Shown: positions 5,973 through 37,335 of the stretch, piece by piece
Position numbering within the stretch: the first letter of the stretch is position 1
Layout of the letters: each line of letters starts with the position of its first letter
Source: Lepidodermella squamata
Taxonomy: Eukaryota > Animalia > Gastrotricha
Assembly: GCA_047495785.1 (NCBI GenBank)
Contig: JBLDXI010000024.1
Span: 2,604,001-2,668,000, forward strand
DNA: 64,000 nt
Direction: 5' to 3'
Notes under the pieces: generated by a model
Databases searched by the model: none
What the model saw: only the letters and a program-made list of their open reading frames with translations
Told to the model about the DNA's origin: nothing
Program-made: the position numbers and the translations under genes

Positions 5973-8372
5973 TCATCCCCGTGAGTTTGGCATTGCATCC
6001 GAGTGGGCAGACCCTGCAACTCGGAAACCATGGTTTGCTGCTGATTTCCAACATCTGCCAAGTGCTGAACCGAATACGCTGAAGAAAACACTCGCAGAGA
6101 TTGAAATCGACACCACAGCCACAACAAGAAGCTGAGTAGGCTGATTGGCGGAACTCCCGCTGAGTATGCCGACGATGGCTAGGGTTGCACTGAACAGCGT
6201 AGTCACATTCCACGTGACGATTCTGAACAACTTATTCCGCCCTCCAGGGTCTTTATACCGCTTAGTGCTGTAGGCGCGGAAGGAACTGATAAACAGGAAA
6301 AGCAAGTTTAGAATCGACAGAGCGATCTCGCATTTGATAGTCGATGAGTATCGACACTGATAGACATAAATTTCCGTCACGGTGTCACTTGTCCCATCGT
6401 AAAAGGGTAGCTCGAAACCCGGGGTGAGGACTAAATTCGGCTTGTCCAGGCCCATTGTGATAGCAAGGCAGACAACATTTATTGTCGCAAATGCGAGAAC
6501 AAAAATGATCGAACCATTCCTGGTTAATCTATAAGACGCATGAACGCGAACATAAGATCGGGCTCGAGATCTAATTCCTTCTCTCGAATGGCTAGTTGAG
6601 CGCTCGTGGAAGTTGCCAACAACGTTAGCCGTCACGTTCCTTGACGGCCTATGGGCTTCAGATGCCAGAAGAAACAGTTGAGCCATAAGGGCCGGGTTGA
6701 TCATGGAAAATCCAAGAAGCAAAATCATCGGGCGCGCTATGCAAGACAAAGCTGAGTTTTTAGCGAAATCACTGGTGAATAAAATCGCCGCGACATTCAG
6801 CAATAAGCAGCCGATTGCTAGAATGATGTTCATAGTCAACCGAAACCGGCTGAATGTGGGTTTTTTGAGAAAAAGCAAGGCTAGGATGACAATTTTTGCG
6901 CAAAGAATCAGCGATGTTATCGAGGTAATCCCCACAAAGGCTGAAAATGGAACCTGATTTATCTCAACGACTTGTGTCACTGAGTCTTTGGGAGGCCTGT
7001 TCGCTGCTCCGGTGCCCCATAGAACAGAATTTACTGCTTGCAAGTAATAAGCATTCGCGTTGTCCCAGGAAGAGTTCTCCTCGCGGTAAACCTTGTAATG
7101 AAGCCGCTGACTCTCACCGGGCTTCCACGATAAAATGTACATTGCTTCGTCGTCGGCCTCCAATCGTTTCGTGTATTTCAGCCTCCCAGCTCTCAAGCCA
7201 ACGTAAGTCATTGCAGCAATCGTTTTGTTCGTAACATCCATGACGTATTGAGGATCGCGACGATAGTCTTTCAGTGTCATATTGACCGAATTTAATTTCT
7301 GCTCCGTTTCTTGCAGGACAACGATGGTTTGCAACATCCTGTCGTAGCATTGATGCCTGTCCTCCCAATCAGTTTGCTTGGTTCTGTTGCTGTACTCGAA
7401 GAATTGTCTCTCAAATGAGGTCAAATCGTAACCAAGCAATGACGTCGGCCCGTTGTTTTCAAGAGCTGCGCCTGTCGCTCCAACGGAAAAGCAGCTTTTC
7501 ATTTGCCTGCCGGCCATCTCCCTAGTACACCCAGGCATTATAACATCAGGCAAGCTATCAGGATCGTAGAGAATTGCGAAGGAGAGTATGAAGACGTATC
7601 GTGGCCCGGTTAGACCGACTTTGAGGGTGAAGCAGAGAAAGCTGAGAAAAGTTGGCAAATCGACTGTTTCAAATGTGAAGATTCGCGCACCGCTCTGTTT
7701 CATGCCCATTGCATTAATCTCAGTGAACCCTGGCGCAAAATCGAAATAGACAACTTTGAGCCCGTTCGCCTCGGCGACCTGATTGAAATTCGTGGCGAGT
7801 TGGACGTTGTATAAATTAGCTGAGTTCGCGTAAATACCAACTTTCGTCCAGCCACCTACTTTTTTCACGAAAATCAGCTGGGCGTAGGCGTACATCTCTG
7901 CAGAGATTCGAGTTCGGTACATATTAGGAAATATCTTCCTGTTCGCAGTGTAGATTGGGGCGAGACAGGTTGAACCTATCATAACAGTGTTCAGATGTTG
8001 CACGAAGGATCCCAGCGATTTGCAACCAGGTGTGAAAATAGGTCCGATGATGAGTGGAGACTGAAACGCGTTCTGCGTGTTCTCCATAAAACGAACGTAT
8101 TGAACTCCGGTAGCTGCAGATTTCATACTACCTGGGCCTTCGTCTCTGAAATCTCCGATTAAGCGATATTTCGGTAGGACGTCACATCGCTTGTTGATTT
8201 CATCCATTAGAAATTGCTGAGCGGCTTCACAGGTTTTCCCATTTCGAGGCTCATTTCCAGTATAGCCAACCATCGAAAGGATGGAGAGGGTTTCTGTTTT
8301 ATCGCGACATTGCCCATCACTTTTCCTGATACCTGCGACGACCAATAAGAGGATGAAATAAATTGACTTCAT
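5973..8372 (-). CDS. Intronless class C GPCR with GABA-B-type architecture, 799 aa from MKSIYF
   Basis: Single ORF with signal peptide after ATG 8372. Shares DEGPGS, FTPGCK, HLN-x-VM, CIARP with the 124-2430 gene; 7TM region present. Confidence 0.85.
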   Translation of the reverse strand: MKSIYFILLLVVAGIRKSDGQCRDKTETLSILSMVGYTGNEPRNGKTCEAAQQFLMDEINKRCDVLPKYRLIGDFRDEGPGSMKSAATGVQYVRFMENTQNAFQSPLIIGPIFTPGCKSLGSFVQHLNTVMIGSTCLAPIYTANRKIFPNMYRTRISAEMYAYAQLIFVKKVGGWTKVGIYANSANLYNVQLATNFNQVAEANGLKVVYFDFAPGFTEINAMGMKQSGARIFTFETVDLPTFLSFLCFTLKVGLTGPRYVFILSFAILYDPDSLPDVIMPGCTREMAGRQMKSCFSVGATGAALENNGPTSLLGYDLTSFERQFFEYSNRTKQTDWEDRHQCYDRMLQTIVVLQETEQKLNSVNMTLKDYRRDPQYVMDVTNKTIAAMTYVGLRAGRLKYTKRLEADDEAMYILSWKPGESQRLHYKVYREENSSWDNANAYYLQAVNSVLWGTGAANRPPKDSVTQVVEINQVPFSAFVGITSITSLILCAKIVILALLFLKKPTFSRFRLTMNIILAIGCLLLNVAAILFTSDFAKNSALSCIARPMILLLGFSMINPALMAQLFLLASEAHRPSRNVTANVVGNFHERSTSHSREGIRSRARSYVRVHASYRLTRNGSIIFVLAFATINVVCLAITMGLDKPNLVLTPGFELPFYDGTSDTVTEIYVYQCRYSSTIKCEIALSILNLLFLFISSFRAYSTKRYKDPGGRNKLFRIVTWNVTTLFSATLAIVGILSGSSANQPTQLLVVAVVSISISASVFFSVFGSALGRCWKSAANHGFRVAGSAHSDAMPNSRG

Positions 8373-8768
8373 TTTTCGAAGAAATAGGAGAAATGACTCT
8401 GCAATAACTATCCCCCCTCGATAGAGCCGCACATCAAATTTGATCTCTTCCTTCCTGCATCAGAGGTATGGTAATGTTTTCCTGCCAAATTTTGATCGTT
8501 AATGCATTCTTGCTGTTGTATCGAAGCGAATTCGATCCTGAGAAAGTCCGCCCAGGTATCATATTTTGTTTTCATGCTATGCCACCGTTTTGAACAATGG
8601 ATCGATCGATCTTACAGCAAAAAATCGATCATCCGATTTCTCTCATAAATAATTCCAGCGATAAAGACCAAAAAACCGCTGGATCGACAATTCTTTTTTA
8701 AACGAATCAGCTTTCAGCCATTTAATGCATAAGCCCGAAGGTTGTGTTGGTTAATGCATTTGAGAAAA

Positions 8769-10066
8769 ATGGGTAACTTAGCCATTACTTTGATCGGAAT
8801 CGTCCTCTTTAATTCCGGATTTCTATCCGCAACATTTGATTACTACGAAAAGCGCTGTGCACATATAAACTTGGCGAAAAGTGGTTGGCATTCATACGCT
8901 GAATACAAACTAGAAAAATGCTACCAACTTGTCGATAAAGATTTGACGTGGCAGAAGGCTCAAGAGTTTTGCAACAGCCAGGTTGGACCGAGTGGTTACT
9001 ACGGCGAAGGCCAGTTGGTCACGTTTGACTCTGCTGAAGACCTCAGCACAGTGAAACAATGGCTGAAAGACATCAAATGCCAGTCGCGTGGGGTATGGAT
9101 CGGCGCTAATCGCTGCAACTCGAATAATGACTTCTGCTGGATGGATGACTCGGCGATGGATACTAACGTCCTGAACTTGAACTGGGCCCCCAGCCAGCCA
9201 ATATTCAACATATTCTTCTTCATCAAGGCTGATTGTGTTCAGCTCATACGGGACTCCTTTTGGAATGCCGGGTCGTTCCCCTGTGACCACCCTTTCTGGC
9301 TAAACTCCTTCATTTGTGAATATCGTAAGGCTTTGAATCCGTATTTGAAATAAATTAAGAAATACTCATTTGACAGCAATGTTGCCCGAGGAAACAACGA
9401 CTACCACGACTACTACAACAACTACAACACCGCAAGTGACAACCTCTACTACTTCACTCGGAGCCGTCTCAAACAAGTCATCGAATTTACTGATGGCTAA
9501 ACGGGTCATGTTTGACGGTGCTGAGGTACCACAGGAAGGCTACTCAAACAGCGACTTGTCCAATGGAGCTGATTCGGCTATTCTTACCCGCTTTATGCTT
9601 CAACTTGTTGACAAGATTCTACCGAATGGTCACACTGACAGCCCGGTGTCATCACCATTGCCGCCATTGTCTTCAACCAACCAGCCTTCAAACAGCAAAG
9701 ATGAGCTGCCTGGAAGTAAGTTTTCTCCTTGGTCTTTCCTTAATCCAGCCTAACTGTATCACAAACATAGACACGCTGCTGATAATTGGGGTGTTTATTG
9801 GCTGCGGAGTTACTGTGATTGGGTTTGCCGCTTTTGCAATCTATCGCTACAAAAAGAGTCGCGTCTCGCCTCTAGATGGCGGCATTATCAATACAGCTGG
9901 CGGTACAACTATTATCAACGTTATGCCAGCGGCGAGTGGAGGTATATCAGTTACTGAAACCTCGAAATCTCTGCTTCAAACTCCTCGAACCAAAAGCGCG
10001 AAGCAAAATGCTGAAAATGAAATTAAAGCCGGGTCAGCCGGGCTACCGCCGCCTTATGCTACCTGA
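8769..10066 (+). CDS. Type I transmembrane C-type lectin-domain protein (CTLD, Thr/Ser stalk, TM, PPPY tail), 3 exons
   Basis: KCYQL, TWQKAQEFC, WIGA, FICE motifs. Introns 9325-9376 and 9716-9770 give a continuous frame; intron positions and phases match the neighbouring paralog. Confidence 0.85.
9394..9429 (+). repeat. ACN codon run encoding 12 consecutive Thr (mucin-like stalk)
   Basis: Directly visible ACA/ACT/ACG/ACC run. Confidence 0.9.
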
Positions 10067-13695: not shown

Positions 13696-14327
13696 TTTCT
13701 GTGAAAAATGCTGTTATTTTTTTGCTAACAGACCAAGGTCTTCTTACTAACACATCCTTTCAAAGCATGTCACGATTTTGTTTACTTAGTATTATCTCCT
13801 TCCCGTTCCCTACTACGAACGAATGCAAATGGTCACTTTTTTAAGCGATAAGATACTGAAAATTACGGCGGCGCTTGCGTATATAGGGTAGAAACGATCG
13901 ATAAAACGCAGAGTAAAATTCAGTCAATGCTCTATAGGTATTGATCGGCAGGAAAAATTGAATGTACCTGTAGAATGAGCAGATATTAGTGCGATATACT
14001 CTTCTCCTTGCTCCATGAAATAATAAAGGCAGTAAAACTTATAATATATACACAAGCTGTAGACGCATAGCTCAATGAATGAACGTGCAGTGGGTAAAAA
14101 ATGTGTTTTTTATTCACATGCCTATTCTGAACGATGTGTTGTGTGTCAAGTATATACAGAAAAACTGCTGCCAATCCTGGTCGCTTTTCAAGGGGAACAT
14201 CTCTATAACCATGGGAGTCAGATCTCAAATTCGAATAACTTTAAAAACAGCGAGTTCTTTCGCTAAAACTGTCATCGAAATTACCCAGATCTAGTTCCTT
14301 TATTACTTTTGAGGATATTAACCACAA

Positions 14328-14819
14328 TCATCCTTCGTTCGTGGTATGCTTTATGTTATCATGAGAAGGTAAAACGACTAGAAAAACTATCAATAAAATG
14401 ATTGCAAGAACTCCAAGAGAAATGGCGACAACGCTCATAATCATAGCTGTCCGGTATCTCCGTTTCGCGTCTTCGAAGTGAATCGGCCTCATCGCAAGTA
14501 GTAAAGCAGGTATTGACAGGAACAAGACGCCGAAGAAGCAAGAAACCACTGCTAGGGAAATCGCCTGTAAACGGAGTCGTTTCAGTAGGAACAGACTGAA
14601 CTCTTCCGGGTTCATCTGTACCACGAAAACTCGTGCCATATCATTGCCGCTGGAATATGTCCCAACAGGCACGCCGATAACAGCAGCGGACTGGTCGCCA
14701 TTGAATTGTGTCAAGTCGGTGAATTGCTGGCGGTTAGCTGAATGAAGATGGCCATTAGCAGGCAGGGAGTGGAACTCCATGCCGTTGGATTGCTTATCAT
14801 ACGAAAAAAATGCAGACAA
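14328..14819 (-). CDS. CD225/dispanin-like two-hydrophobic-segment membrane protein; 5' end uncertain (upstream exons likely)
   Basis: Low-complexity N-terminus, then LAVVSCFFGVLFLSIPALLLA..EDAKRRYRTAMIMSVVAISLG, matching dispanin topology. Confidence 0.55.
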   Translation of the reverse strand: MSAFFSYDKQSNGMEFHSLPANGHLHSANRQQFTDLTQFNGDQSAAVIGVPVGTYSSGNDMARVFVVQMNPEEFSLFLLKRLRLQAISLAVVSCFFGVLFLSIPALLLAMRPIHFEDAKRRYRTAMIMSVVAISLGVLAIILLIVFLVVLPSHDNIKHTTNEG

Positions 14820-15263
14820 GTAAGCTCTTACGGCAGTGCTGATGCCTTCCGCTACCTGGCCATCGATCGGGTAAACAATTTCCGCTCTTGTAAGAGTATT
14901 TGGGCAGTTTACCGATGCTTCTACGTAGAGATAATTATAATTTCTCCCGTATAAAAACCATTAACCAAAACGTGACGCAAGCAGCCCAGTCACCACAGAC
15001 TGGAACAAATGCTGTGTTTCAACTTCATTCGCACTGATTCGATGATTTAGATCTGACAATCCTTTGGGAATGATTGGCAAAATAACAAACCATATTGCGT
15101 CATATCACTAATTCATGAAAATACCTAGATACAATTAATTGAAAATTCATGATTCCAGTGAACACTATTCAACGACATAGAGCTATGTCTGTTGGTGCAA
15201 TGATTTTGCTTGCACCTGCAAACAAAAAACCGGAAAACCCTATTAAATTGAATTTCTCTTGTA

Positions 15264-15948
15264 ATGGCCGAGTCAGGTTTGACGTCGAACGAATCTGTTA
15301 CCCAAGCCAGCCTGTCTAGCGGATTATTAAGAGGTCATCGGTTTATCAGTGCCCCTGATCACTCGGGTCATGTTCACTACAACTCTGAGAACCAATTGAT
15401 AGGCGCCATGAGCTTACTCATCTTTATTATTGCAATCGGAATGATGGCCCCCGTAAGCTGCCTTAAATTTCTGAAATTTCTCCTAAATTTTCCTACAGGC
15501 CATTCGAATCATCTTCCAGGCAATGGATAAGCTGATTTTCCGAGGGAAAAATCTTGTAACAAAACACGCGAGCTGTGACTATGGAGTTTGCTTTGAAGAA
15601 GTTCTAGACGATGGTAATGTCATCATACACGAATGTCCCGGCCTTCTGGAGTTGGAAACGGACCTTGGGCTGAATTTCGATTTCAACGATGATTCATCTC
15701 TCAAGAAACCATTCCTACCTCCGAGGCGGAATTCAAAGAGCGTGCGGTTCGATTTTGATAAGACCTCAGTCAGTGAGATGGCTGATACTAAGGATAACTC
15801 AAGCCATACCAGTTTCACAAGTGTTCAAGAATCAGCTAACAACTGCATCTCAAGGGACAACTCAATATTTTCTGTTGAAATTATGTCCGACGCGAATGAT
15901 ATGACTAATTCTGTTTCTTTTGATAACGCTAATGCTTTAAACGTGTGA
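15264..15948 (+). CDS. His-rich single-pass membrane protein, array copy 1 (212 aa; exons 15264-15452, 15499-15948)
   Basis: Shared motif QLIGAMSLLIFIIAIGMMAP|AIR with a phase-0 GT-AG intron at the same position as in the four paralogs. Confidence 0.8.
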
Positions 15949-16155
15949 TCTGGGTCCGGTATTATCCACCACGGCATGATTATCGATTTTTTCCTGAGAT
16001 TAGTAGGCTATTGTTTTCAGCGATTTGTGAGGTCATTTTTGCGTCTCAGCTGAACCATATGACTTTATACCCCTATATGATCAATAAAACAATCACTTGA
16101 TTGCATGCTTTTTCATCCAAAAATTGCGTTGGCCACCCCACCCTTGTGATCAGCC

Positions 16156-16556
16156 ATGTCACCGTACATTTCTCAGACGCAGCTCGCGATAAAAAAGATG
16201 AATCGGTCATTGCTGCTGGCGGGCAATGGAAGTGCCATTCACGTTCATCTCATGCATAGCCACATAAAGGTTGCTGAACGCGACGAAGATCACTCTCATG
16301 ATGCGCATTATCCACTTGTTGGCGCTATGTCATTTCTTCTGCTCATCATAGTCGTCGGCATGATGAGTCAGGTCAGTTATATCTTGATAATAATTACTTG
16401 TTTTTATTGAGTTGTTTACGATTAATTCAGGCAATTAGATTCATTTCTCGAGCTATTGAGCAGCTGGTACGGGGAGCTGGGATCAGGAGGCCTGTTCTCG
16501 ACAAATCTCAGCCTGTGATGTCACAATTTCATGGATCTGACGAGGGAATCTTTTAA
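16156..16556 (+). CDS. His-rich single-pass membrane microprotein, copy 2 (113 aa; exons 16156-16371, 16431-16556)
   Basis: YPLVGAMSFLLLIIVVGMMSQ|AIR; conserved intron position. Confidence 0.8.
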
Positions 16557-16761
16557 TGAAAATGAAGAGTTATCATTGCATTATTTGCTCATTCGAAGGG
16601 TTGATGTCGAAAATTGTAAAAATTCGAAATTAAATCAATAAAAACGCGTCAACGGATAATGCATGTTACTACCATACAACGAGAGCTGATCAATCAGTTT
16701 CATCTATTAAAGCCGGTTTTGGCGAATTTCAACAAATTTCTTCATTCTTCGGCGACCTTAA

Positions 16762-17067
16762 ATGAATAGGAACGAAACATTAGATCACCACCACATCATT
16801 GCATCTCATAGCCACGGACACGGTCAAGATACAATTGAATATTCGCTGGTCGGTGCGATGTATCTCCTCATCTTTATCATAGCATTCTGGACGATAGGAC
16901 AAGTAAGTTTGAATCTAGCTTAATAATTTCAATTTCGATGAGTTTTTTACGTTCATAAGGCAATTCGATACGTATTAGAGGTCGCTGAGAAACTGATGTT
17001 CCGGGGCGAAGTTCCTGAGGTCGATGAAGATATTCTGTTCCAGAACTTTGCTATCGATAACGACTAA
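16762..17067 (+). CDS. His-rich single-pass membrane microprotein, copy 3 (82 aa; exons 16762-16902, 16960-17067), absent from the ORF track
   Basis: MNRNETLDHHHIIASHSHGHGQDTIEYSLVGAMYLLIFIIAFWTIGQ|AIRYVLEVAEKLMFRG... Confidence 0.8.
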
Positions 17068-17313
17068 CACATCCTATACATAGGTGTTATGTATCAAAAT
17101 CTGATCAAGAATAAGAGCATACTCATCAGCAATAACAGTAAATGAACGCAAATGCGAGAAACACAACTGCGGCAATTACGCGATAAAACCATGGCCATAA
17201 AGCACCGCACGCCGAAATTTATTGCTCTGGAATCAACGGCGAGTGCGCAGACGTTACCACTATGATATCGAAAGCTGTGTGGTCCATATTTCGATTCTTA
17301 TGCCTAGTAAATT

Positions 17314-17693
17314 ATGGACAATTCGAGCAAGATTGATAGCGAACCTGCTGTTGGCGGTCACGAAGTTTTGCATCGCTTCACTGGAGCACCCGAGCATGCA
17401 GGCCATGGTGAAGAAAAGCCGGAATACCAGCTGATGGGGGCGATGTTCCTACTGGTCTTCATTATTTCAGTCGGCATAATGGGACAGGCATGTGAAGAGA
17501 TTTTGTGACATTATTACTCATTTTATTGGGGTAAATTTAGCTATTTCGGGTATTACTACATGCCGTGGAAAATCCTTCGCCAGTCGAATCCGACCACCCT
17601 CCGGAAGATGGATTTGATGAAATCGATAGTTTCGAAAAAGATACCTCTAACAATGACGGCAACATGATGCGTGAAACCGTGAATGCGGTGTAA
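17314..17693 (+). CDS. His-rich single-pass membrane microprotein, copy 4 (108 aa; exons 17314-17487, 17541-17693; GC-AG intron)
   Basis: YQLMGAMFLLVFIISVGIMGQ|LFRVLLHAVE; the donor at the homologous position reads CAG|GCATGT. Confidence 0.7.
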
Positions 17694-18050
17694 AAATCTG
17701 TTTTGTGAATTCTTGAGACCAGATTAGTAAATTGAATAATTTCGTTATTTTTAGCTCTTTAAAAGTGAAATGTGTCTATGATTTGGCCGCAGTAATAATC
17801 TCATGTCGAGGCTCCTTTAATTAAGCTAAGTGTAATTTAGGGGTGAAAAATGTATGATTCAGCAGTATCACCTATACAATAGAAGAGGAAGTTTCTAGCT
17901 ATTCAATTTGAGATGATGAAATCGACGAGTCTGGTTCGTAAACACATCAGCATGAGTGATTCAGCAGAAGTCTACTTCCCCCTCGGATTCTCAATGCTTT
18001 CATATAAAAATAAGTTTTGCCTTGTCGGTGGTTAAGAATATTTCTTTTCA

Positions 18051-18412
18051 ATGGGGAAAAATCTAGTAATCAATGCAACTTTGCTATCCGTCAACCCGGC
18101 CGGGAATAGCAATAATGGTGGAGACAAGCAGCATCCACAAGATTCCCACGACCATTCTCACGATACCCAATATCAGCTATTAGGCGCAATGTCCCTTCTG
18201 ATAGTCATCATAGCTGCGGGAATGATTGGGCAGGTGAGCAATTTTTCAAACACTTCTTCATTCTCTATCTTTTGTTTATTTGAATATAGGCAATCAGGGT
18301 CGCTTTTCACACGTTCTCGCGAGTGCTTTATCGGTCAGACTCTCCATCGAACATAGACGCGGAAAGTGTTCAGGCTATGATAGACAGTAACTACGACATC
18401 CTTTCCGAATGA
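18051..18412 (+). CDS. His-rich single-pass membrane microprotein, copy 5 (101 aa; exons 18051-18233, 18290-18412)
   Basis: HDHSHDTQYQLLGAMSLLIVIIAAGMIGQ|AIRVAF; conserved intron. Confidence 0.8.
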
Positions 18413-18607
18413 CAATTGATCGGAACCAATCGATTGTTGGATCATCTGCTATGTTCGATTGCAATGAAGTTCCTAATTCAGCATTCAGCCGTGTTGTGAA
18501 TCCCGCATGCAAGACAGGAACTTGATTGCGTTGTTAGTAAAGTGCGGCCACATATAATGCTCGAATATTTTATTCACTTTTAAAATCAATTTCTGAGGGT
18601 AATCAGT

Positions 18608-20502
18608 TCAGGTATCAACATCAGGCTGCTGGCTGACTACTGCCAAAAATATTACACAAGGTGCGATTAAGGTCATAGCAATGTAAAGAATGGAGATTAT
18701 TCTCGAAAAGCTTAGGGCCAACAAGTACCAAGCCCTGTTCGAAGAGATGTCATATTTAGGGTCAGATTTAGCTGCCAGAATAGCATTGAAGTAAGGCTCA
18801 GCTTCCGCCGTGTCAAAGAAGGATGATATACTGATAGCATCCACCACGTCATTGGCAAGAAAAGGGTTAACCCGTGTTGGCAAAAGGCCAAAAACCTGTT
18901 CGAACGGCGACAGGTAGCGTAAGGCGCGTAAATCTTTCGATTTTACACGCTTATCACCGGCTTCAAGCTCGTAAGCTTCTTCGAAACTGACCCGTAGAAA
19001 AATTGCGAAATCTACCACGAAATGGCGGAAATTTTCCGACATTTTAGTCCGCTGTAATGCGCAGATTTTCCCGCATTCAACGATAAGCATTGTGAAGCCT
19101 TGGCCGAGAATAGCTATCATGACGAATACCATTTGCATCAACAGGAATTGGGCGATAATCGCTGAAACAGATTTCAAAATCATCATACAAATATTACAAA
19201 ATTATTTGTTTGAACTTACGCGGATGATCGGATGTTCGAGGTAGGTTTTTATTCATTTCGGCCTGAAAATGGCATGATTGAGGTACAACATCTCAAAATG
19301 AAGAAATCGACTCACGTGAACAAAAGTGTAAGACAAGAGGCATACGAATGAGACTTGAATGTTGGTAGCGTCAAGAATCTGTAATCCGCAATTTCAATAA
19401 GCTCCTAACTTTAAAAAGCATGAAATCGAACCGGAAGTTGGAAAGTTGAGAATTCCGTGATGCTGATGATGATGACAGGAAATATGACGAAGACTAAAAC
19501 CAAAAAACATAAGAGACACTTCTCGAGAGATGCTCTAATCTTACGTTTGTAAAAATCACTTCTCCGCTGTACTGCAATCTCAAAATACACCTTAATATTG
19601 GAAAAATGCTGTAAAAAATTCTCGAAAAAAACTTGTGTACCAACCCCAGCGTTACAGTCAGCCCCAGTAGCGTTTGGCGCGCAGTTGATGTATTGACCGT
19701 GGTCAACACTGAGTAGTTGCCACTGTTCGCTTTCAACGTACTGCGTCAAATCAAGTGGAGCGTCGCTTAGCCTAAAATGCTGCTGATCGGGCGTGTAAGT
19801 CCAACTTTCGAATGAAATGCGACACTGCTGTTGATCGTATGGGAAATACGTTAGGTCAAAGTCGCATGACGAGCCAAAGCTAGCTGTCGGGTAGTAAGTT
19901 ACCCTGCCATCGGATTCAATGTTCACCATTACACCGTTTGCCAGACTCAGCGTATACATATCCTTACTGTGAACAAATAAGACAGACCAATGACGATTTC
20001 GAAGGCAAATCTGAAGTGACTTATCGAAATTGCGGCAATGTCTGGGGTCCAAACCTTTTCAGGGTCAAGAACGATATTTGGAATAGCACCGAACTCAGTC
20101 TCGTTCCACACCAGGTATTCATCCATCCATGACGCTGTTAAGGTAGCTGATGTTATGATCAAATTATCCACCTCAAGCTATTGCGATAGAATAATCATAG
20201 AAGAAAGATAGCTGTCATAGTTATCTTACAATTTCTTCGATTTCAAATAGACGCAGACTCAGGGTGACTTCGATAGGATCCAGTGAGTTCTTTCTAGGCC
20301 GAAACCATGGATTGTATCCGCGCTGCAAGTGGCGTAGAAGTTGTAACTCGGATGGGGCTACAAATTGTCGATATAAGCAACGGCTTCTTTCTATACTCTA
20401 AGAAGACCTACCCTCCCTGTGTTTATCAAAGCGGAAGTTATTGCCATGGATCTCGAACAGGTGAAGGCTCAATACAAGCATCACAATTTGAACTTTTCCC
20501 AT
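18608..20502 (-). CDS. Divergent Cys-loop (nAChR-like) ligand-gated ion channel subunit, multi-exon
   Basis: YNPWFRP, WMDEYLVW, VWTPDI, Cys-loop CDFDLTYFPYDQQQC, ESWTY, M1-M4 and LPRTSD, joined through short GT-AG introns. Confidence 0.9.
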
Positions 20503-22255: not shown

Positions 22256-25200
22256 ATGCCCAAGTCTGTTAATTTGCCGCACTCGGCATCCGACCACGAG
22301 GCCAGTGGTCCGGAATCAGACAGTGATGAGCCTCGCGTCCTGATCCTTGCCAGGAAGAAGCAATGGACGGCAATTGAGACGTACTTGAGTGCGATGCGCC
22401 GGCGCCAGGCGCGCCTTGATAAGTCGCTACTCAACCCGACAGATCCAACGACGAGCCTCACTCTGCTCATGTTGGCGTGTCGCGAAAATCGCCGTGGGGT
22501 CATCGAGGCTCTTCTCGACATCGGAGTTGATGTCACCCAAGAAGCCGATGTAAGTCCTTAAATAAAATATAAATGATGACATATATGTTTACAGAAAAAC
22601 TTCCAAATCAGCCTTTGAAATTAAATTTTTGAAAAATGTTCTTAGGATGGCTCTACTGCTTTGCATTTCGCCGTTGGAGCTTGCAGTGACATAATAATAG
22701 AAAACTTGCTGAAAAGTGGAGCAGATCCGAATATAGTCGGTGGGGTAAGTTTTCAAACAAAATCGTCTCAATTTTTATTTTAGCGTTTTTAACAGCCAAA
22801 CGAGCAACTTCCATTGCACATTGCCTGCCAGCGAAGTTCTACTGCCCTAATTACGACTAAAATGCTTATGCGGAAGATGAGGGCCGAAGGTCGACTCATT
22901 AAGGACAAGGTCACAAATCTTGGTTAAATAAGCGAACAGTATGGAAAACCAAAATTTTATCATTTTAGAATGGCTGGATGCCGATAACTTATGCTGTATC
23001 GAATAGCAATCCGACCCTGGTTCGGGAGTTACTGACTTACTTCCCTCGAGAACAAACCGACGGCTGGCGGGAGGAGAAAACTGGAAATTCACTGGTAATA
23101 ATGGCAGAATTTACGGAAATCTGTACCTATCGCCAATTTTCTGTATTAGCTACATCTAGCGACTTTAAAACGAAGCCCAACAACAGCTGAGGTGCTAGTA
23201 AGACAAGGCCACGCCAATGTGAATCTTCAGAACTCGAAAGGCCAAACAGCCTTGCATTTAGCTGCGGCAAATTCAGATGAAATTATGGCGAAATGTCTTC
23301 ACTCTTTACACGCGAGTGCTGATATTGCGGATAAAGCCGAGCGAACACCGCTTCATGTGGCAGCCGTTGCTGGAAATACGTTGATAATTGAAATGATGGT
23401 CGATCGGATGAAAGCTGATGTCATGGTAAGTGCAAGCAGTTACTTTATGTATCTAAATTCAAGGAAAATTGATTCTCATATATATACCATACCCGAATTC
23501 TCTAATGTTTACTTCAACCAATTTGCAAGCCGGTCACAGAAGAAACGTTGTTAAGGAAGCTTAGGAATGTTGTCTAATCTAGGACCCGATGTCTTTATTG
23601 AAAAGAAAGATAGTTAGCAATGGAAACAGGCAGTTTTAAGCTGGCAATAGCTGCCATTCTTTGCTTCTGTCTTAGTGGCAACTTGCTCAAAATGACGGAT
23701 CTAGCAAGGGCTTGGAGCTTGATTCGACTCATCAATCCGCGTTTTAAATTGAGAATATCAAAGGTTTCATCCTTGACATAAACTTCAAAGAAAGTAGATA
23801 ATAGTTCGTCGCTGGTGTGATGCAGCATTTCTGTTATTTGGTATAGCTCACCGCGAACTCGTCTGTGAAATCCAGAAAATCTCGGGCCGGACTGAAGGAG
23901 AGGGATAACAACAGTACGCAAGACTTTTTCGGGGGGGTTTTTCTGGAATGCGAGGCCGGCCATGCAGGCGAAGAACTCAAGTCCAGCAGTGTTTGTTCCT
24001 TCGGTATCGTAAGCAATAGCTTCAATTACAGACACAGTCACGTCATCGTCGCATTCTTCGAGATAAGGGACTAAGTTGTAACAAATACCACGTCCCAGTA
24101 TGTAGCTACTTGTTCTGCTGTCTTCGAGCTTTTCAGGATCAGCTTTATCAAGAATCAGCTTTATGATGGCGTTTTTGCGGGAACGAAGTTCATCATTTCT
24201 GTCGTACCTCATCAAGGTCTTTGCGAGAGGTGAGATGAAAGTCATATAAGACCATAGTGGGTACTCGGCCGAGGCTCCAAAAGAGAGTAGAATCTCAACT
24301 CCGGGTGGAAATCGCACCCCAATGGCTATTGCAAGTAGATATGAGAGCAGGCAACTTGGCAGGGCTGAATGTTTGCCTAATAGCTCTTTCAATGAAGCTG
24401 CATTGCGAACTTGAACGCTTAGACTCATCAAAATCACCGATGAGTAATCACCACAGCTCGAGGCAGGAAGCATGCCCTGCAGCAATAACAGTTGTTCATT
24501 TTTCCACTCGCCGTCTATCGGATGCACATAGACATTTCTTGGTCCGATCGGGTAAAAAAGCGGTGGAATCAGTAATTTGTCGAACCCCGAGAAAGCCTGC
24601 CTTGTGGGAAGTTCAAGCAAGGTCATCGTCGTTAGACCAAGGTCATCGCTTTTAGTTTGAAATAGGTGCTAAGTCTCATCGAGAGCATTGCGTAGAACAT
24701 TTGAATCGTCCGGTTGGTGAAAATGGCACCGAGAACCGTTGCAAATCAGGCCCTCGGTGAAGTCTTTTTCTAAACTGTTCAATGCACTTTCCCCCCACTG
24801 TCTTTGATGCGGATTGAAGTTCTGACTCCCACTGAAAAGTGCTGTAGCCATTTTCTTAGACTGGTGTTCTGACGGAACTCAAATTTGGTGTTTCACGGGA
24901 TAAGCGGAATCTGCGATAAGATAAAGACGTCCAGAAACATCTCAGTGTGATTTCTGTCTTCTAATCAAACTTATTTTTCTATAGATATGGGTGAAACAAA
25001 TAAACTTAAAAAATGCCAGAATATTGCTTTTCTCTATTTTCAAGATGCGAACAACTGATGGCTCGACATTGATGCACCTTGCAGCTGAAGCTGGCCACAA
25101 AGCATGCGTAGCCGCTTTCCTGAAACGCGGCGTGTCTCTCGCTATGCCTAACAAATCCGGCATCTTATCGCTCCACCTCGCAGCGCAAAACGGGCACATC

Positions 25201-28200
25201 GACGTTGTACGCACCCTACTGGAACAAGGCGCTCCCGTCAACGCGCGGACGAAAGAACGCGTCACAGCTATGCATCTAGCAGTGATGTACAACAAGCCGG
25301 AGGTGATACAGCTGTTGATGGGCTTTGGTGCTAATGTCGACGTCAAGGGCGGCGTTAAGTTGGAGAGTCCGCTGCACATAGCGGCGAAGACGAATGCTGT
25401 TGCGTGTGCCCGGATGTTGTTGCTGAGTGGGGCTAATGTGAATGCGGTGTCGGGTGACGAGCAGGAAACGCCGCTTCACATGGCGGCAAGGCGGGGTTAC
25501 GACACCCTGGCGGCTCTACTTCTCGATGAAGGTGATGATTAGCCTATTTCGAACTATATAATAACACGTGGAATAAATATGGAAAATTTAACGATTTATT
25601 CTCAATAAAAAATAAAATTAAAAAATTCGCGAAATTTCGAAAATTATTTCGAAAAATCATCTTAAATTTAAAAATTTCCAAAAAAATATGTAGAAATTTT
25701 TCAAAAATTAGGGCAATATTTTAGGAATAATTTGCATATTTATTTTTTATTCCAAAAAATGCATGGGATTTTTGTAATATTTTTCATTTTTCACTCAATT
25801 CAGAATATGCCTGAAACCGCCGTTGGGAATTGTTATCGAATTTCATTTCTTTTATTTGTTTCTAGGAGCCCATGCGTCCATGTTGTCGAAGAATGGCGAA
25901 TCAGCCCTGCATCTAGCCGTTCGCCACTGCCACTTTGCAATGGTCCGCCTGTTGCTGGAGCACGCGAAGAAGCGCGCATCGCAGCGCGAAGTCGCTCACC
26001 TGGTCAACCAATCATCGGCCGACGGCGAAACCAGCCTGCACATGGCATTCGAACTCGACGACCGCCGGGTGCACTATGCTTTTGAAGATGTTGATATCGC
26101 TGATATTTTAATGACGAATGGCGCAGACCCGTTGGCTAAAACTAAATACGTAAAAATTTGAAAAAATAATTTCGAAAGAAATTCTGAATCTGAGATTTTT
26201 TCATTAAAGACGCTTGAAACGCCGCTACATTACAGTGCTCGATCCGGAAACATCAACGTCACGGTTGAATTAGCAAGATTTATGGTTAGAATTTTGAAAT
26301 GAGAACGTTTCGAATTTATTATTTTTTAATTTTTATTCAAGGGTCATAATTTCTCCCCTCTTGCTAACCGCCAAGCGAAGGTGAGTCTAAAAATAGAATT
26401 TTATTCTGTATTGAAGATGATTTTTTCGATTCGATAGAACGGAAAATCTCCGCTGCTCACTGCGTGCTATCATGGCCACACGGAAATCGTCGATTTTCTG
26501 AGTAATTTTTTCAAATTTTTATTTTCAATAATATTATTTAAATTTTCTACTCAATTTCAAACTTTTCAAATTTCAAATTTTTTAATTTTTGTAAATTTTT
26601 TCTCATGATATTTTTTGTATTCAGCCCAGCAAAACGCTCGTGTGGACCTTTTCGATGAAATGGGTCTCGCTGGGCTTCATGTGGCCGCCGAACAGGGTTT
26701 CATCGAATGTTGCGAGCTCCTTTTAGCTAAAAAAGCCTTCGTCAACGCCAAGTCACGTGCCGGCATTGCCCCGCTCCATCTGGCGGCCGCAAACGGCTTC
26801 AAAGATCTAGCCGTCCTTCTAGTCCGGAAATACCACGCCGCTCTCGACATTACGTCATTCGACAAGAAAACTCCCCTACATTTCGCCGCTGAAAATGGGC
26901 ACGAGTCCGTGGCCCATGCCCTGGTCCAGCTGCGGGCTGATGTGAATGCGGTTGATTCGATAGGCCAGACGCCGTTGCATCTTGCGGCAGAGAGTGACCA
27001 CTCGGGGGTTGTTAAAATGTTCCTGAAATACAGGCCTGAGCTGGTGTTTTCGGCTACGGCAGACGGCATGACTTGCGCTCATATAGCTGCCGGTTCGTTT
27101 ACTAGCTGTTTGAAATTTTATGAAAATTTTAAAATTTTTGAATGAAATCATAAAATTAACATGACAAAAATTTATAAAATTTACAAAAGATTGAATTTTA
27201 TAGGGATTAAATAAAGATTTTAAAATAAGGGTGAAAAATTGGGAAATTGAAAAAAATTATTTACGTTAATTATGAGAAATTCAAAAAATATTCAAAAATT
27301 TTACTTCAAAGCTTTGAAAATAAATGTAATGTTTTTAATTATAGCCAAAGGTTCTGTCGCCGTAATTAAAGAGCTGATGCGGTTCAACCGCGGCGTAGTA
27401 ATCGGGGCTCGAAATAGGGCCGAAGACAAGCCGCTTCACCTTGCTGCAAGCGGCGGCCATGGTGACGTAGTCAAAATCCTTATCGACGCCGGTTCGCCGC
27501 CGCAAGATGAAAACGCCGACGGCATGACGGCGCTTCATTTAGCCGCAAAGGAAGGATACCCGAATATACTCGGCGCAATCCCGGCATCGGTATCATGGGG
27601 GCTGCCTAGTGTGAAAACGGGGCTGACGCCGATTCACGTGGCGGCTTTCTTCTCAAAGGTCGACATGGTTCGCGAATTGCTAACCCGCGTGCCGCCTGAT
27701 GTCAAAACAGCCCCGCCGACCTTTATCAATATCAAGGATGAAAGTTTGAAAAAACTCATATCAACTGATGTAAGTCTTGAATTATTGAATGAAAAATCAA
27801 GTAAAAATCTGAAAAATTGCTTATAGCATGGCCTTACTCCGCTGCATGTTGCTTGCTATGCCGGGGTCGATCAAGTCGTTCGGCTTCTTCTGAATATTCC
27901 AGACGTACGGCCAGAAGCTAGGAGTACAGTTCAGGTACAAATTATCATTAGGCTGAAAGCTGATTGCTGAGTTTTTTTTAATATTTTTCCGAATTGTTTA
28001 GAAAACGACACCTCTTCATTTAGCAGCTGAAACTGGAAGTTTGACCGTTGCCAGTCTGTTGTTGTCGAAATCAACTGCCCTAATGAATAAAGAGGACGCC
28101 AGGGGTCAGAAGCCGTTGCACCTTGCAGCTCGAAATGGCCAAACCGACATGATTTCCAGCTTGGTCGGTCAGGGAGCTGATATTAATACTACAGACAATG

Positions 28201-34520: not shown

Positions 34521-37335
34521 GACTCAGCTAATGTCATCGAACCTTTATTTTCTTTTCGCGTACCATTTTGACTTAAAGCGTCGGAAATACAAAAATCGCA
34601 AGGAAAGTAAATTAAACCATCGGAATGACTTGTTTTGATTTATTTCATCGGAACACGCGACTAATGTATCGTAACACTACCTTAAACCGTCGGAATTCGC
34701 GCTAAATTGAAGCAGCAATGAACGATTTATTAAACATTAATTTATTCTCCCATTTTTCATCATTCGAAACATGAATTTTTTGAAATTGTACGAATCTGAC
34801 GGAAGTGTAGAGGAATTTGAGGACTCCGACGAGGCTATCGATGGGCAGTCGGTCGAGAATCAAGATCAGGACTGGGATGAAGATGACCCTGCTCTGGTTG
34901 ACGATGAAAATGACTTTATTGCCGACCCGAAGCCGACAGATGAATTTGAGTTTGATTTGTTCGAAACTTTGCCATTCGGCATTACATTCCATGAAGCCAA
35001 GGACTTTGTCAAGCGGAACTACAGCATTCTCTGGATTGACACTACGAAGAGCGGTTTCAACAAGCAAACATGCTATTACGTCTGTAAGCATCGGAAGTCT
35101 GGCTCAAAGGATTGCCCCCATCGGGGTGTACTCAAATGGTCTCCTGACCAAGCCGTGTTTTCGTGTGGCGGCGCTCATGTGCATCCAACCAATTCGACAC
35201 GCGTGTTAACAGCCGAGGTGAGGCGATATGTGCTGGATCATATCAATGATCCACCCAAGTACATCAGGGAGCGGCTCATCAAAGACAATCCAAAGCTGAC
35301 AACGAGGCAAGTCGCCAATTTGAAGCAACAGTTGAAGAGAAAACATCGAATGGCAACTGTTGGTCCTGACGCGCTTTCAAGCTCTTTCGGAACAGCCGAG
35401 CTTCGTGCCTGGTGCGAATCACGAACTCAGAAGCCTGTCGATGACAAACAACCTTATGTCGTCCACTACGAAGTCGAGGAATCGCTGGCTAACAAGGATA
35501 GGAAACCGTTCTGGGCAGTTGTCATTAGCTGCACGTTCCTCCTTAATCTTCTGGCCGTCGCTAGAAGTTTCCAAATCGATGCCACGCACAAGGTAATCCA
35601 GGGTGGCCACAAGGTCTTTATTGGCGGCTCAAGTGACAAAAACCGCAAGTTTCACCCCATTTTACTCGGAGTTGCGAGCAACGAAAACGGCAGAGCATAC
35701 GAGGTCATTTTTCGTAGTTTGAGAAAGTTTATGCCCCTTTATCTTCCGATGGCGGTAATGGCAGATGGCGCGGGCTATATTACTACTGCAATCGAAACAA
35801 TCTTTGGCAAGGGAGCAGTGCTACGATTGATGTGCTATTTTCATGTGAAGTTCAACGCGCGGAAATGGTTTGGGCGTAAGTAATTTGCCTCTTTCCGACG
35901 GTCGTAAGACAATTTTACCTTTGTTTACAGAGAGTCGGATCAAATTGTGGTACAAGGTGCACGACCTACTAACGCTCGTTCAGCTCGCATTGTCACGCCC
36001 TGAGGTAATTCCGACGGTGTTAAGATATTCCGAAATTAAAAAATTTTCATTTTTAGTTTTTGCTGTTGTGGCAGCTTGCCAAGGATGAGATGGCGGCCAG
36101 CGATCACGCCGATGTTTATGCTGAGTTCGTCGCTTATTTCGAGCCAATATACATTTTCGGGCCTCTTGCTAACTGGTTCGAGGGGGCTTCAGAGTTTTGC
36201 TGCACTAATAACGGCAACGAATCCCTCAACAACGTTACCAAAAACGAGCAGACTCATCGATTGATTCACGCCCTGACCGCATTCTTGGCAAAAACCGACA
36301 ACGTCATTTCGAGTTGGGTTGTTAATTCAGAACCGTTCGCAACGTCAGCCGCGATAACGGACCGCCTTAAAAAAGAAGGTTACCAGCTGTTTTTACGTTT
36401 CACTCAGTGCTTCGAAGAAGTCGGTCCCTCATCATGGCTCGTTATGAAACCTGGCTGGCAGGTCAACAGTGTTGTTTCTGAAGCGCGAACGACAGCCTTG
36501 TGGACGAGTTTGGCCCAATTTGAATGTTCGATTGACTTCTGTTCACTGATCACTGCCGAGCCAAATCTTATCAGCTGTACGTGCCGCTTAGGTTCCAAGA
36601 AAATTCCGTGCGAGCATGTTGTAGCTCTCGGTCACAAGCTGGATTCGAAACCGATTGATAAACATCTTCAGTCGATTCCGCTGGTGCTGCGCGGTAACCC
36701 TCGGGGTAGGCCGCCTCGCCACGGTCGTGCGCTGGAATTCGCTAAGCAGGTTGGCATGGCTCCTGAAACAGCTACTGAAGCCACTTTTCCTGCTGGTCCT
36801 CCTGAAACCGAACCGATTGGTCGAGGCTCTAGAGCACGAGGTCGCGGCCGTGGACGTGGTCGAGGACAAGCCACCACAGTGGAGCAACTACCCGCTGTTG
36901 TTCGAGGAAGAGGTCGCGGGCGGCCCCGAGGCCGTGGATCAGGACGAGGACAGGGATCAGTTGATTTGCTGGCAGTTGAAGATGCTCCGATTGCCGCTAC
37001 AGCAGCGATGACACGAAGCCGAGGTCGCGGTCGTGGACGCGGGGTGGAGCTTCCAGAAGAGCTGGTTGCTCCGGCGGTTGCTCGCGGCCGTGGCGCGGGT
37101 CGCCGACGGGGGCGGGGACGTTCTTAATTAAGTCTTAATTTGCGACTCTTTGAAAGTTACTTATTTGATCGAACATAATGTCTTAACACATCGGAAAATA
37201 AGAATAAATATAAAGGCGACTTTTCCGATGCTTATTATTTAAAATATAAAAATTGAATATTCCGATGGTTCCGACGCTTTAAGTTAAAATGGTTCGAGAA
37301 AAGAAAATAAAAGTTCGCGGGTTTCATGTTACTTC
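34521..37335 (+). mobile_element. Mutator-like element (MULE), 2815 bp, apparently autonomous
   Basis: 9-bp TSD GTAGCGAGG (34512-34520, 37336-37344), GA..TC termini, ~47-bp subterminal inverted repeat CGAACYTTTATTTTCTTTTC..ACTTAAAGCGTCGGAA, internal transposase. Confidence 0.85.
34771..37127 (+). CDS. MULE DDE transposase with SWIM finger and RG/AT-hook tail (749 aa; exons 34771-35875, 35931-36004, 36057-37127)
   Basis: IDATHK, MADGA, CYFH, TNNGNES, SWIM CTC..PCEH, RGRP motifs. The two GT-AG introns give an uninterrupted 2250-nt frame. Confidence 0.9.

Follow-up and report, generated by a model that had tools for sequence, protein, structure and literature searches.

Five tandem genes for small single-pass membrane proteins of an apparently lineage-restricted, previously undescribed family in the gastrotrich Lepidodermella squamata

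A stretch of 64,000 nucleotides (nt) of the Lepidodermella squamata genome (assembly GCA_047495785.1, contig JBLDXI010000024.1, positions 2,604,001 to 2,668,000 of the forward strand; hereafter the window, with positions counted from its first letter) contains, at 15264-18412 on the plus strand, five co-oriented two-exon small genes, g1 to g5, whose models were rebuilt by script from the sequence. They are best read as an old tandem expansion of a lineage-restricted, previously undescribed family of small single-pass membrane proteins. Gene g1 (15264-15948) comprises exon 1 (15264-15452), an intron of 46 nt with GT..AG borders (15453-15498) and exon 2 (15499-15948, including the stop codon), and encodes 212 amino acids (aa); its helix core lies at 15396-15452 within exon 1, and an AATAAA is located at 16083. 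Gene g2 (16156-16556; exon 1, 16156-16371; intron of 59 nt, 16372-16430; exon 2, 16431-16556) encodes 113 aa, with the helix core at 16315-16371 and an AATAAA at 16637; an alternative start at the second Met (ATG at 16198) would yield 99 aa and lines up with the starts of g3 and g4. Gene g3 (16762-17067; exon 1, 16762-16902; intron of 57 nt, 16903-16959; exon 2, 16960-17067) encodes 82 aa, with the helix core at 16846-16902 and the densest His cluster among the five. Gene g4 (17314-17693; exon 1, 17314-17487; intron of 53 nt with GC..AG borders, 17488-17540; exon 2, 17541-17693) encodes 108 aa, with the helix core at 17431-17487 and LFR where the others have AIR. Gene g5 (18051-18412; exon 1, 18051-18233; intron of 56 nt, 18234-18289; exon 2, 18290-18412) encodes 101 aa, with the helix core at 18177-18233; this intact gene shares 43-51% of its core residues with the other four.

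All five introns are in phase 0 and fall at one and the same point of the alignment, after the codon for core position 22 (Q or P) and before that for position 23 (A or L). For g4, splicing depends on GCATGT as a non-canonical GC donor; use of a canonical GT that lies 4 nt further downstream was rejected, for it shifts the frame off the conserved x-x-R helix pattern. The spacers between the array genes measure 205-357 bp. No further copies were found when the five proteins were compared with the whole window (tblastn), and the upstream regions of the five genes, when compared with each other, had no motif in common. A single larger gene with alternative exons was also rejected as a model; every unit starts at an ATG and ends at a stop codon of its own, AATAAA signals follow g1 and g2, and RNA-like contigs are interrupted between g2 and g3.

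An ungapped block of 35 residues, here termed the core, fits all five proteins at a pairwise identity of 43-51%; the N-termini and the tails could not be aligned. The motif L-x-G-A-M-x-x-L-x-x-I-I and an R three residues past the splice site are invariant (L4, G6, A7, M8, L11, I14, I15 and R25), and a further six positions (Y2, L10, G18, Q22, A23 and I24) are kept in four of the five. A degenerate DNA pattern of the core matched three of the five genes in the window, versus none in 100 shuffles. Synonymous sites of the core are saturated (proportion of differing synonymous sites, pS, 0.61-1.0), at a proportion of differing nonsynonymous sites (pN) of 0.29-0.37 and a nonsynonymous substitution rate (dN) of about 0.4; the ratio of dN to the synonymous rate (dS) is 0.13-0.31 for the pairs in which dS was computable. 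The 35-residue core is under purifying selection.

A DNA sequencing run (X2) that contains 98% of the array stretch holds two haplotypes; the following figures refer to the differences listed for this run. The second haplotype is present at about 40% of the depth and is diverged by about 10-12% in the interval 16338-17001, i.e. heterozygosity is very high at the array locus. Between g2 and g3, the second haplotype has 221 different letters in place of 184 nt (16598-16783). The indels among the listed differences are all intronic or intergenic: six small indels (net -7 nt) lie inside the predicted g2 intron, two lie in the g3 intron, and the remaining ones are intergenic or within an intron of the neighbouring channel gene. 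The listed single-nucleotide polymorphisms (SNPs) in exons are three synonymous changes and one I>V replacement; g3 exon 2 carries two of the synonymous changes and the I>V replacement, and the SNP at 17546 in g4 exon 2 is synonymous in the spliced frame. As a subset of the haplotype differences, those listed are taken as support for coding, not as an estimate of pN/pS. Since synonymous divergence of the core is saturated at low nonsynonymous divergence, and since the listed haplotype indels all fall outside exons, the five genes are selected coding genes.

A second run (X1), of low depth, is RNA-like, a label that is only a guess. It includes a contig of the neighbouring channel gene from which five successive CT..AC introns (GT..AG on the minus strand) of 51-58 nt had been removed, and the run thus carries complementary DNA. 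X1 covers g1 at 15235-15795 (low), g2 by a contig at 16574-16646 that represents the 3' untranslated region (UTR), g3 by contigs at 16690-16779 and 16751-16822 (5' UTR and exon 1), and g4 at 17292-17665; transcription of g1 to g4 is supported by these contigs. Splicing of g1 to g5 is predicted from the in-frame x-x-R helix pattern directly after each acceptor, the shared phase, the restriction of indels within the genes to introns, and the intron sizes, since the predicted introns (46-59 nt) are comparable in length to the RNA-verified introns of the channel gene. Many X1 joints of the type 'opposite strands' were also recorded in the interval 14300-19900, with sides of about 50 nt and a spacing of 90-160 nt; they have the look of concatenated mate pairs and not of rearrangements.

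Each of the five proteins has exactly one hydrophobic segment (Kyte-Doolittle mean over 19 residues, 2.1-2.5), and no N-terminal hydrophobic signal was found in any of them. The helix is internal and is followed by 36-150 residues. The helix is preceded by an acidic stretch of 15 residues (net -2 to -4) and followed by 15 residues that are basic in four of the five proteins (net +1 to +3). The residues preceding the helices are rich in His (25 of 125), with a juxtamembrane His cluster in all five proteins, and the 14 residues after the helix are amphipathic (hydrophobic moment, 0.49-0.94). The tails carry net charges of -11, 0, -6, -9 and -5 in g1 to g5, respectively. An N-x-S/T sequon is located within the first 24 residues in all five proteins (joint chance 0.0025 in composition-preserving shuffles), and only one sequon was found elsewhere, in the long g1 tail. 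Structure prediction for g3 with AlphaFold2 (AF2) without an alignment returned one continuous helix over residues 3-62, with a predicted local distance difference test score (pLDDT) of 86-97 over about residues 31-60, i.e. the membrane segment plus the AIR stretch. For the g1 tail (149 aa), no Pfam domain was found, and the AF2 model was uninformative (pLDDT 32).

For the orientation in the membrane, we infer a lumenal or outside N-terminus (type III) and a cytoplasmic, divergent and acidic tail; this N-out topology is favoured because the positive-inside rule fits four of the five proteins and the N-terminal sequon is kept in all five. The reverse, a type II signal anchor, would leave the His-rich N-terminus in the cytoplasm, where the cluster would have its role, with the acidic tails lumenal or extracellular and the sequons unused. 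The missing cleavable signal peptide, N-terminal regions of a length (28-53 residues) that can stay in the cytoplasm and the flank charges of g4, which do not discriminate, are compatible with this arrangement; we nevertheless judge it unlikely, given that the C-terminal flank is 3 to 6 charges more positive than the N-terminal flank in four of five proteins, and that the N-terminal sequon is kept in all five despite unalignable N-termini, the only other one being that in the g1 tail.

An earlier note on this DNA had described five co-oriented two-exon genes of 212, 113, 82, 108 and 101 aa with a phase-0 intron at the same codon, and the rebuilt models agree with it in lengths and, in all five cases, in intron position. 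Its description of a conserved membrane core between diverged flanks and tails was likewise reproduced, as was selection on the core, for which dN/dS was not near 1. The same applies to its protein features: a single membrane pass without signal peptide, a sequon near the N-terminus, a His cluster before the membrane, and an amphipathic post-membrane helix leading into mostly acidic tails (negative in four of five; g2 is at 0). The type III topology that it proposed is the better prediction.

No relatives of the five proteins were recognised in the collections searched. The five exon-1 and five exon-2 translations had no match in Pfam-A at E<=10; a hit of spliced g3 to DUF599 (12.6 bits against a cutoff of 27) was below threshold and was rejected. 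Queried with g2 exon 1, and separately with the alignment of the five sequences, a word index of 5.8 billion proteins gave no match at E<=10 and did not return this genome's own products either. A hidden Markov model (HMM) search of 1.84 billion representatives yielded two matches, both to long repeat proteins (one with HYR-like repeats, and a bacterial one with repeated LAVGAMYELIF), which were rejected as spurious because their scores accumulate over 5-8 repeats. Profile and single-sequence searches of all PDB chain sequences found nothing except a designed protein and noise from a His run, the latter in an NDUFB5 subunit. In the Joint Genome Institute (JGI) metagenomes, a back-translated pattern gave 28 stretches, of which none was confirmed, and three matches to a 41-bit degenerate pattern were set aside as chance matches that lie outside open reading frames (ORFs) or lack a His-rich context; in the ESM Atlas, searched by features, the best score (0.84) was below the lead threshold. 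A 60-position profile needs, by our estimate, roughly 45 bits for significance in the library of 1.84 billion, and small genes are under-annotated; divergent orthologues may have been missed because of these two factors and because this genome's own products were not returned. The five proteins constitute a genuine orphan family, i.e. a new family of a known kind, the small single-pass membrane proteins.

Among proteins of this kind, KCNE, FXYD and phospholamban are small single-pass regulators that work via their membrane helix and give a precedent for proteins of this size as obligate partners of channels and pumps. KCNE is the closest in kind: small and single-pass, N-out and sequon-bearing without a cleaved signal peptide, as is also predicted for the array proteins, and with a conserved membrane helix that leads into a basic juxtamembrane helix and a variable tail. 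KCNE proteins differ in lacking a His cluster, they have no sequence match to the array proteins, and no Kv partner is indicated; ISK_Channel (PF02060, KCNE) was not matched at E<=10 by the exon-1 and exon-2 translations or by spliced g3. The local pattern G-[IM]-M-x-x-x-I-R at the inner helix end may resemble KCNE, as the earlier note proposed. Phospholamban, sarcolipin and FXYD resemble the array proteins in their small size and in having paralogues with diverged tails; their function resides in one membrane helix with a Leu/Ile stripe of heptad type, to which the array helix may be a counterpart. However, phospholamban and sarcolipin have a cytoplasmic N-terminus and a C-terminal helix, whereas the array helix is internal and predicted N-out, and FXYD is set apart by its F.YD pattern, which is absent from all five array proteins; neither group has a sequence match to them. 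The copper transporters of the Ctr family (PF04145), and the ZIP and ZnT transporters with their His-rich loops, share with the array a His-rich, possibly glycosylated segment beside the membrane, which in the array is predicted to be on the extracytoplasmic side. Ctr proteins, in contrast, have three membrane helices, with MxxxM in the second and GxxxG in the third, and a Met/His-rich extracellular N-terminus; the array proteins have one helix with neither motif in it, and His-rich N-termini (the above 25 of 125 residues) without Met motifs. None of the five proteins contains MxxxM or FxYD, GxxxG occurs in no membrane helix, and no match to Ctr was found in Pfam or among the PDB sequences. 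Kinship with KCNE or Ctr, as considered in the earlier note, is thus unsupported, with no clear match to a described family in Pfam or the large protein collections and only noise in PDB; what stands of its overall interpretation are the real paralogous genes, the selected core and the N-out prediction.

Conservation over core positions 4-25 is periodic, with its strongest spectral component at 100 degrees per residue (p 0.017 by permutation, from five sequences only), which is the periodicity to be set beside the heptad Leu/Ile zipper of phospholamban. The conserved residues form a heptad-like stripe (core 4, 8, 11, 15, 18, 22 and 25, plus 7, 14 and 21) that runs from the outer to the inner helix end, with a mean conservation of 4.6 out of 5 on the stripe versus 3.25 out of 5 off the stripe. 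Because the conserved residues lie along one face of the helix, the stripe suggests a packing surface that would make a fixed helix-helix contact, the mode of action of regulatory microproteins such as phospholamban, FXYD, KCNE and EAT-18 (for EAT-18, PMC7173930). What selection has preserved is the membrane helix together with its outer and inner end, and not the soluble portions. The working part of these proteins would then be the helix itself; the stripe would contact copies of itself or a multi-pass partner, the His cluster, situated 5-20 residues outside the membrane, would bind metal (Zn, Ni or Cu) or be titrated at a pH close to neutral, and so tune the helix contact, and the variable tails would provide a different cytoplasmic output for each paralogue. 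We consider it about an even chance that g1 to g5 encode N-out, single-pass regulatory or accessory membrane microproteins of this type, acting via the helix and carrying a predicted metal- or proton-binding His cluster.

If the stripe contacted only copies of itself, the proteins might instead form homo-oligomeric bundles, with a ring of His at the outer mouth, that act as a metal- or proton-handling pore or as a membrane-tethered metal buffer with no separate partner. The heptad-like L/M/L/I/G/Q stripe with its conserved small-residue pair G-A, the conserved Met and Gln on the stripe, and the juxtamembrane His cluster in five of five proteins are all in keeping with such bundles. The stripe is almost wholly hydrophobic, however, which makes it a poor ion path, MxxxM is absent, and five paralogues with unrelated tails suit modulators better than one pore; we therefore hold the homo-oligomer to be improbable, to much the same degree as the reversed topology.

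A candidate partner is encoded next to the array. A gene for a Cys-loop ligand-gated channel, which is outside the array family, has its 3' exons at 18608-20052 on the minus strand (Neur_chan_LBD, E 1.5e-20), and the channel stop at 18608 and the stop of g5 are 195 bp apart, which confirms the tail-to-tail arrangement described in the earlier note. The last exon of the channel (192-aa ORF, membrane part) matched no Pfam family at E<=0.001, and the channel is therefore a divergent one. Accessory proteins of such receptors have a precedent in nematodes, in which the Cys-loop receptor EAT-2 has an obligate single-pass partner, the auxiliary protein EAT-18, with an intracellular N-terminus and an extracellular C-terminus (PMC7173930). 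The gene for EAT-18 is nested in lev-10 and not located beside eat-2. As a lineage-restricted single-pass partner of a Cys-loop channel, EAT-18 is the best precedent for the accessory-subunit idea of the earlier note; it is set apart from the array proteins by its reported topology, which is opposite to that predicted here.

That the five proteins are dedicated accessory subunits of the adjacent orphan channel would be in line with the 195-bp tail-to-tail adjacency and with the EAT-18 precedent (PMC7173930), in spite of the opposite topology of the latter. However, adjacency weighs little in a compact genome in which the spacers within the window are 200-450 bp, and the other neighbours (GGT, G-protein-coupled receptors (GPCRs) and ankyrin genes) are unrelated. 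The channel exons are covered fairly evenly by X1, whereas cover of the array is patchy and that of g5, the gene nearest to the channel, is nil, with the proviso that contig depth cannot rank expression. In addition, the best relative of the GGT gene, in a metagenome, has no family member within its 3.8-kb upstream flank, on a contig that lacks the channel region. The dedicated accessory role is hence a very remote reading, the predicted link between array and channel being nothing beyond adjacency. The broader proposal, that the proteins are metal- or proton-sensing accessory subunits whose His cluster reads extracellular Zn, Cu or pH and whose helix docks on an ion channel, be it the adjacent Cys-loop channel or another multi-pass partner, is only marginally less remote.

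Several observations weigh against the reading of g1 to g5 as spliced genes for N-out regulators that act via the helix. The joints listed for X1, at its low depth, included no splice junction of g1 to g5, and X1 gave no cover over 17666-18600, which includes g5; of the RNA support looked for, the patchy cover of g1 to g4 is what was obtained. One read-pair-like X1 contig continues past the end of g4 exon 1 and reaches about 17514, within the intron. The C-terminal flank of g4 is not basic (net -1). The periodicity test is based on five sequences, and its significance is lost when the analysis is extended over the post-membrane helix (p 0.12). His-rich stretches elsewhere can be of low complexity and without a role. 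Finally, no orthologue was found in any other species in the protein collections, PDB, the metagenomes and the ESM Atlas, a scope that does not cover eukaryote genome assemblies.

The g4 intron may be retained or poorly spliced, and without its removal the product would be of 64 aa. One might accordingly regard g4 and g5 as decaying or unspliced copies, in which case the functional unit would be the exon-1 product, with the AIR helix and the tails dispensable; the GC donor of g4, the read pair that enters its intron and the lack of RNA cover for g5 would be explained in this way. Yet the frames of g4 and g5 past the acceptor keep the x-x-R-hydrophobic-x-x-x-small-x-acidic pattern, in g5 less fully at the end, the exon-2 SNP in g4 is synonymous, and GC-AG is a recognised intron class, the commonest of the non-canonical ones; the RNA depth is too low to judge either way. 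Decay or absence of splicing strikes us as distinctly improbable, and five spliced genes remain the preferred models.

The orphan family is well supported, and its function is a prediction. Known small single-pass proteins (KCNE, FXYD, phospholamban and EAT-18) are key regulators of channels and pumps, and proteins of this type are often missed by gene prediction; g1 to g5 are absent from the protein collections searched. With a sharply conserved helix face, a conserved His cluster predicted to be extracytoplasmic and free-running tails, the family represents a clean case for the origin and tandem diversification of membrane regulators. Should the His cluster turn out to sense metal or pH and to be coupled to a partner, it would constitute a new regulatory module, and the accessory-subunit reading, if true, would mean that a new class of channel auxiliary proteins had evolved independently in an invertebrate lineage that is little studied.

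The GGT gene lies upstream of the array. The closest match to its product, at 60% identity, comes from a metagenome contig of 4.9 kb, on which no member of the array family is located upstream of that match; the next relatives are from Lingula and molluscs, at about 45% identity. A 163-aa ORF between GGT and g1 (14328-14819, minus strand) has two hydrophobic segments, no Pfam family and RNA-like cover at 14487-14673, and has no similarity to the small gene located upstream of GGT in the metagenome contig (L001). Two class C GPCR genes (ANF_receptor plus 7tm_3) are predicted at 124-2430 and 5973-8432 on the minus strand, each as one uninterrupted ORF of about 770-820 aa, and a C-type lectin ORF at 8742-9353. 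Downstream, a SOCS-box ORF (minus strand) followed by three ankyrin-repeat ORFs (plus strand) occupies 23595-27826; the latter three may belong, as exons, to the TRPN-like gene named in the earlier note. Between the ankyrin genes and a dynein gene, adjoining ORFs at 34771-37127 (plus strand) with a MULE transposase domain and a SWIM zinc finger are predicted to represent a Mutator-like transposase or a domesticated copy of one.

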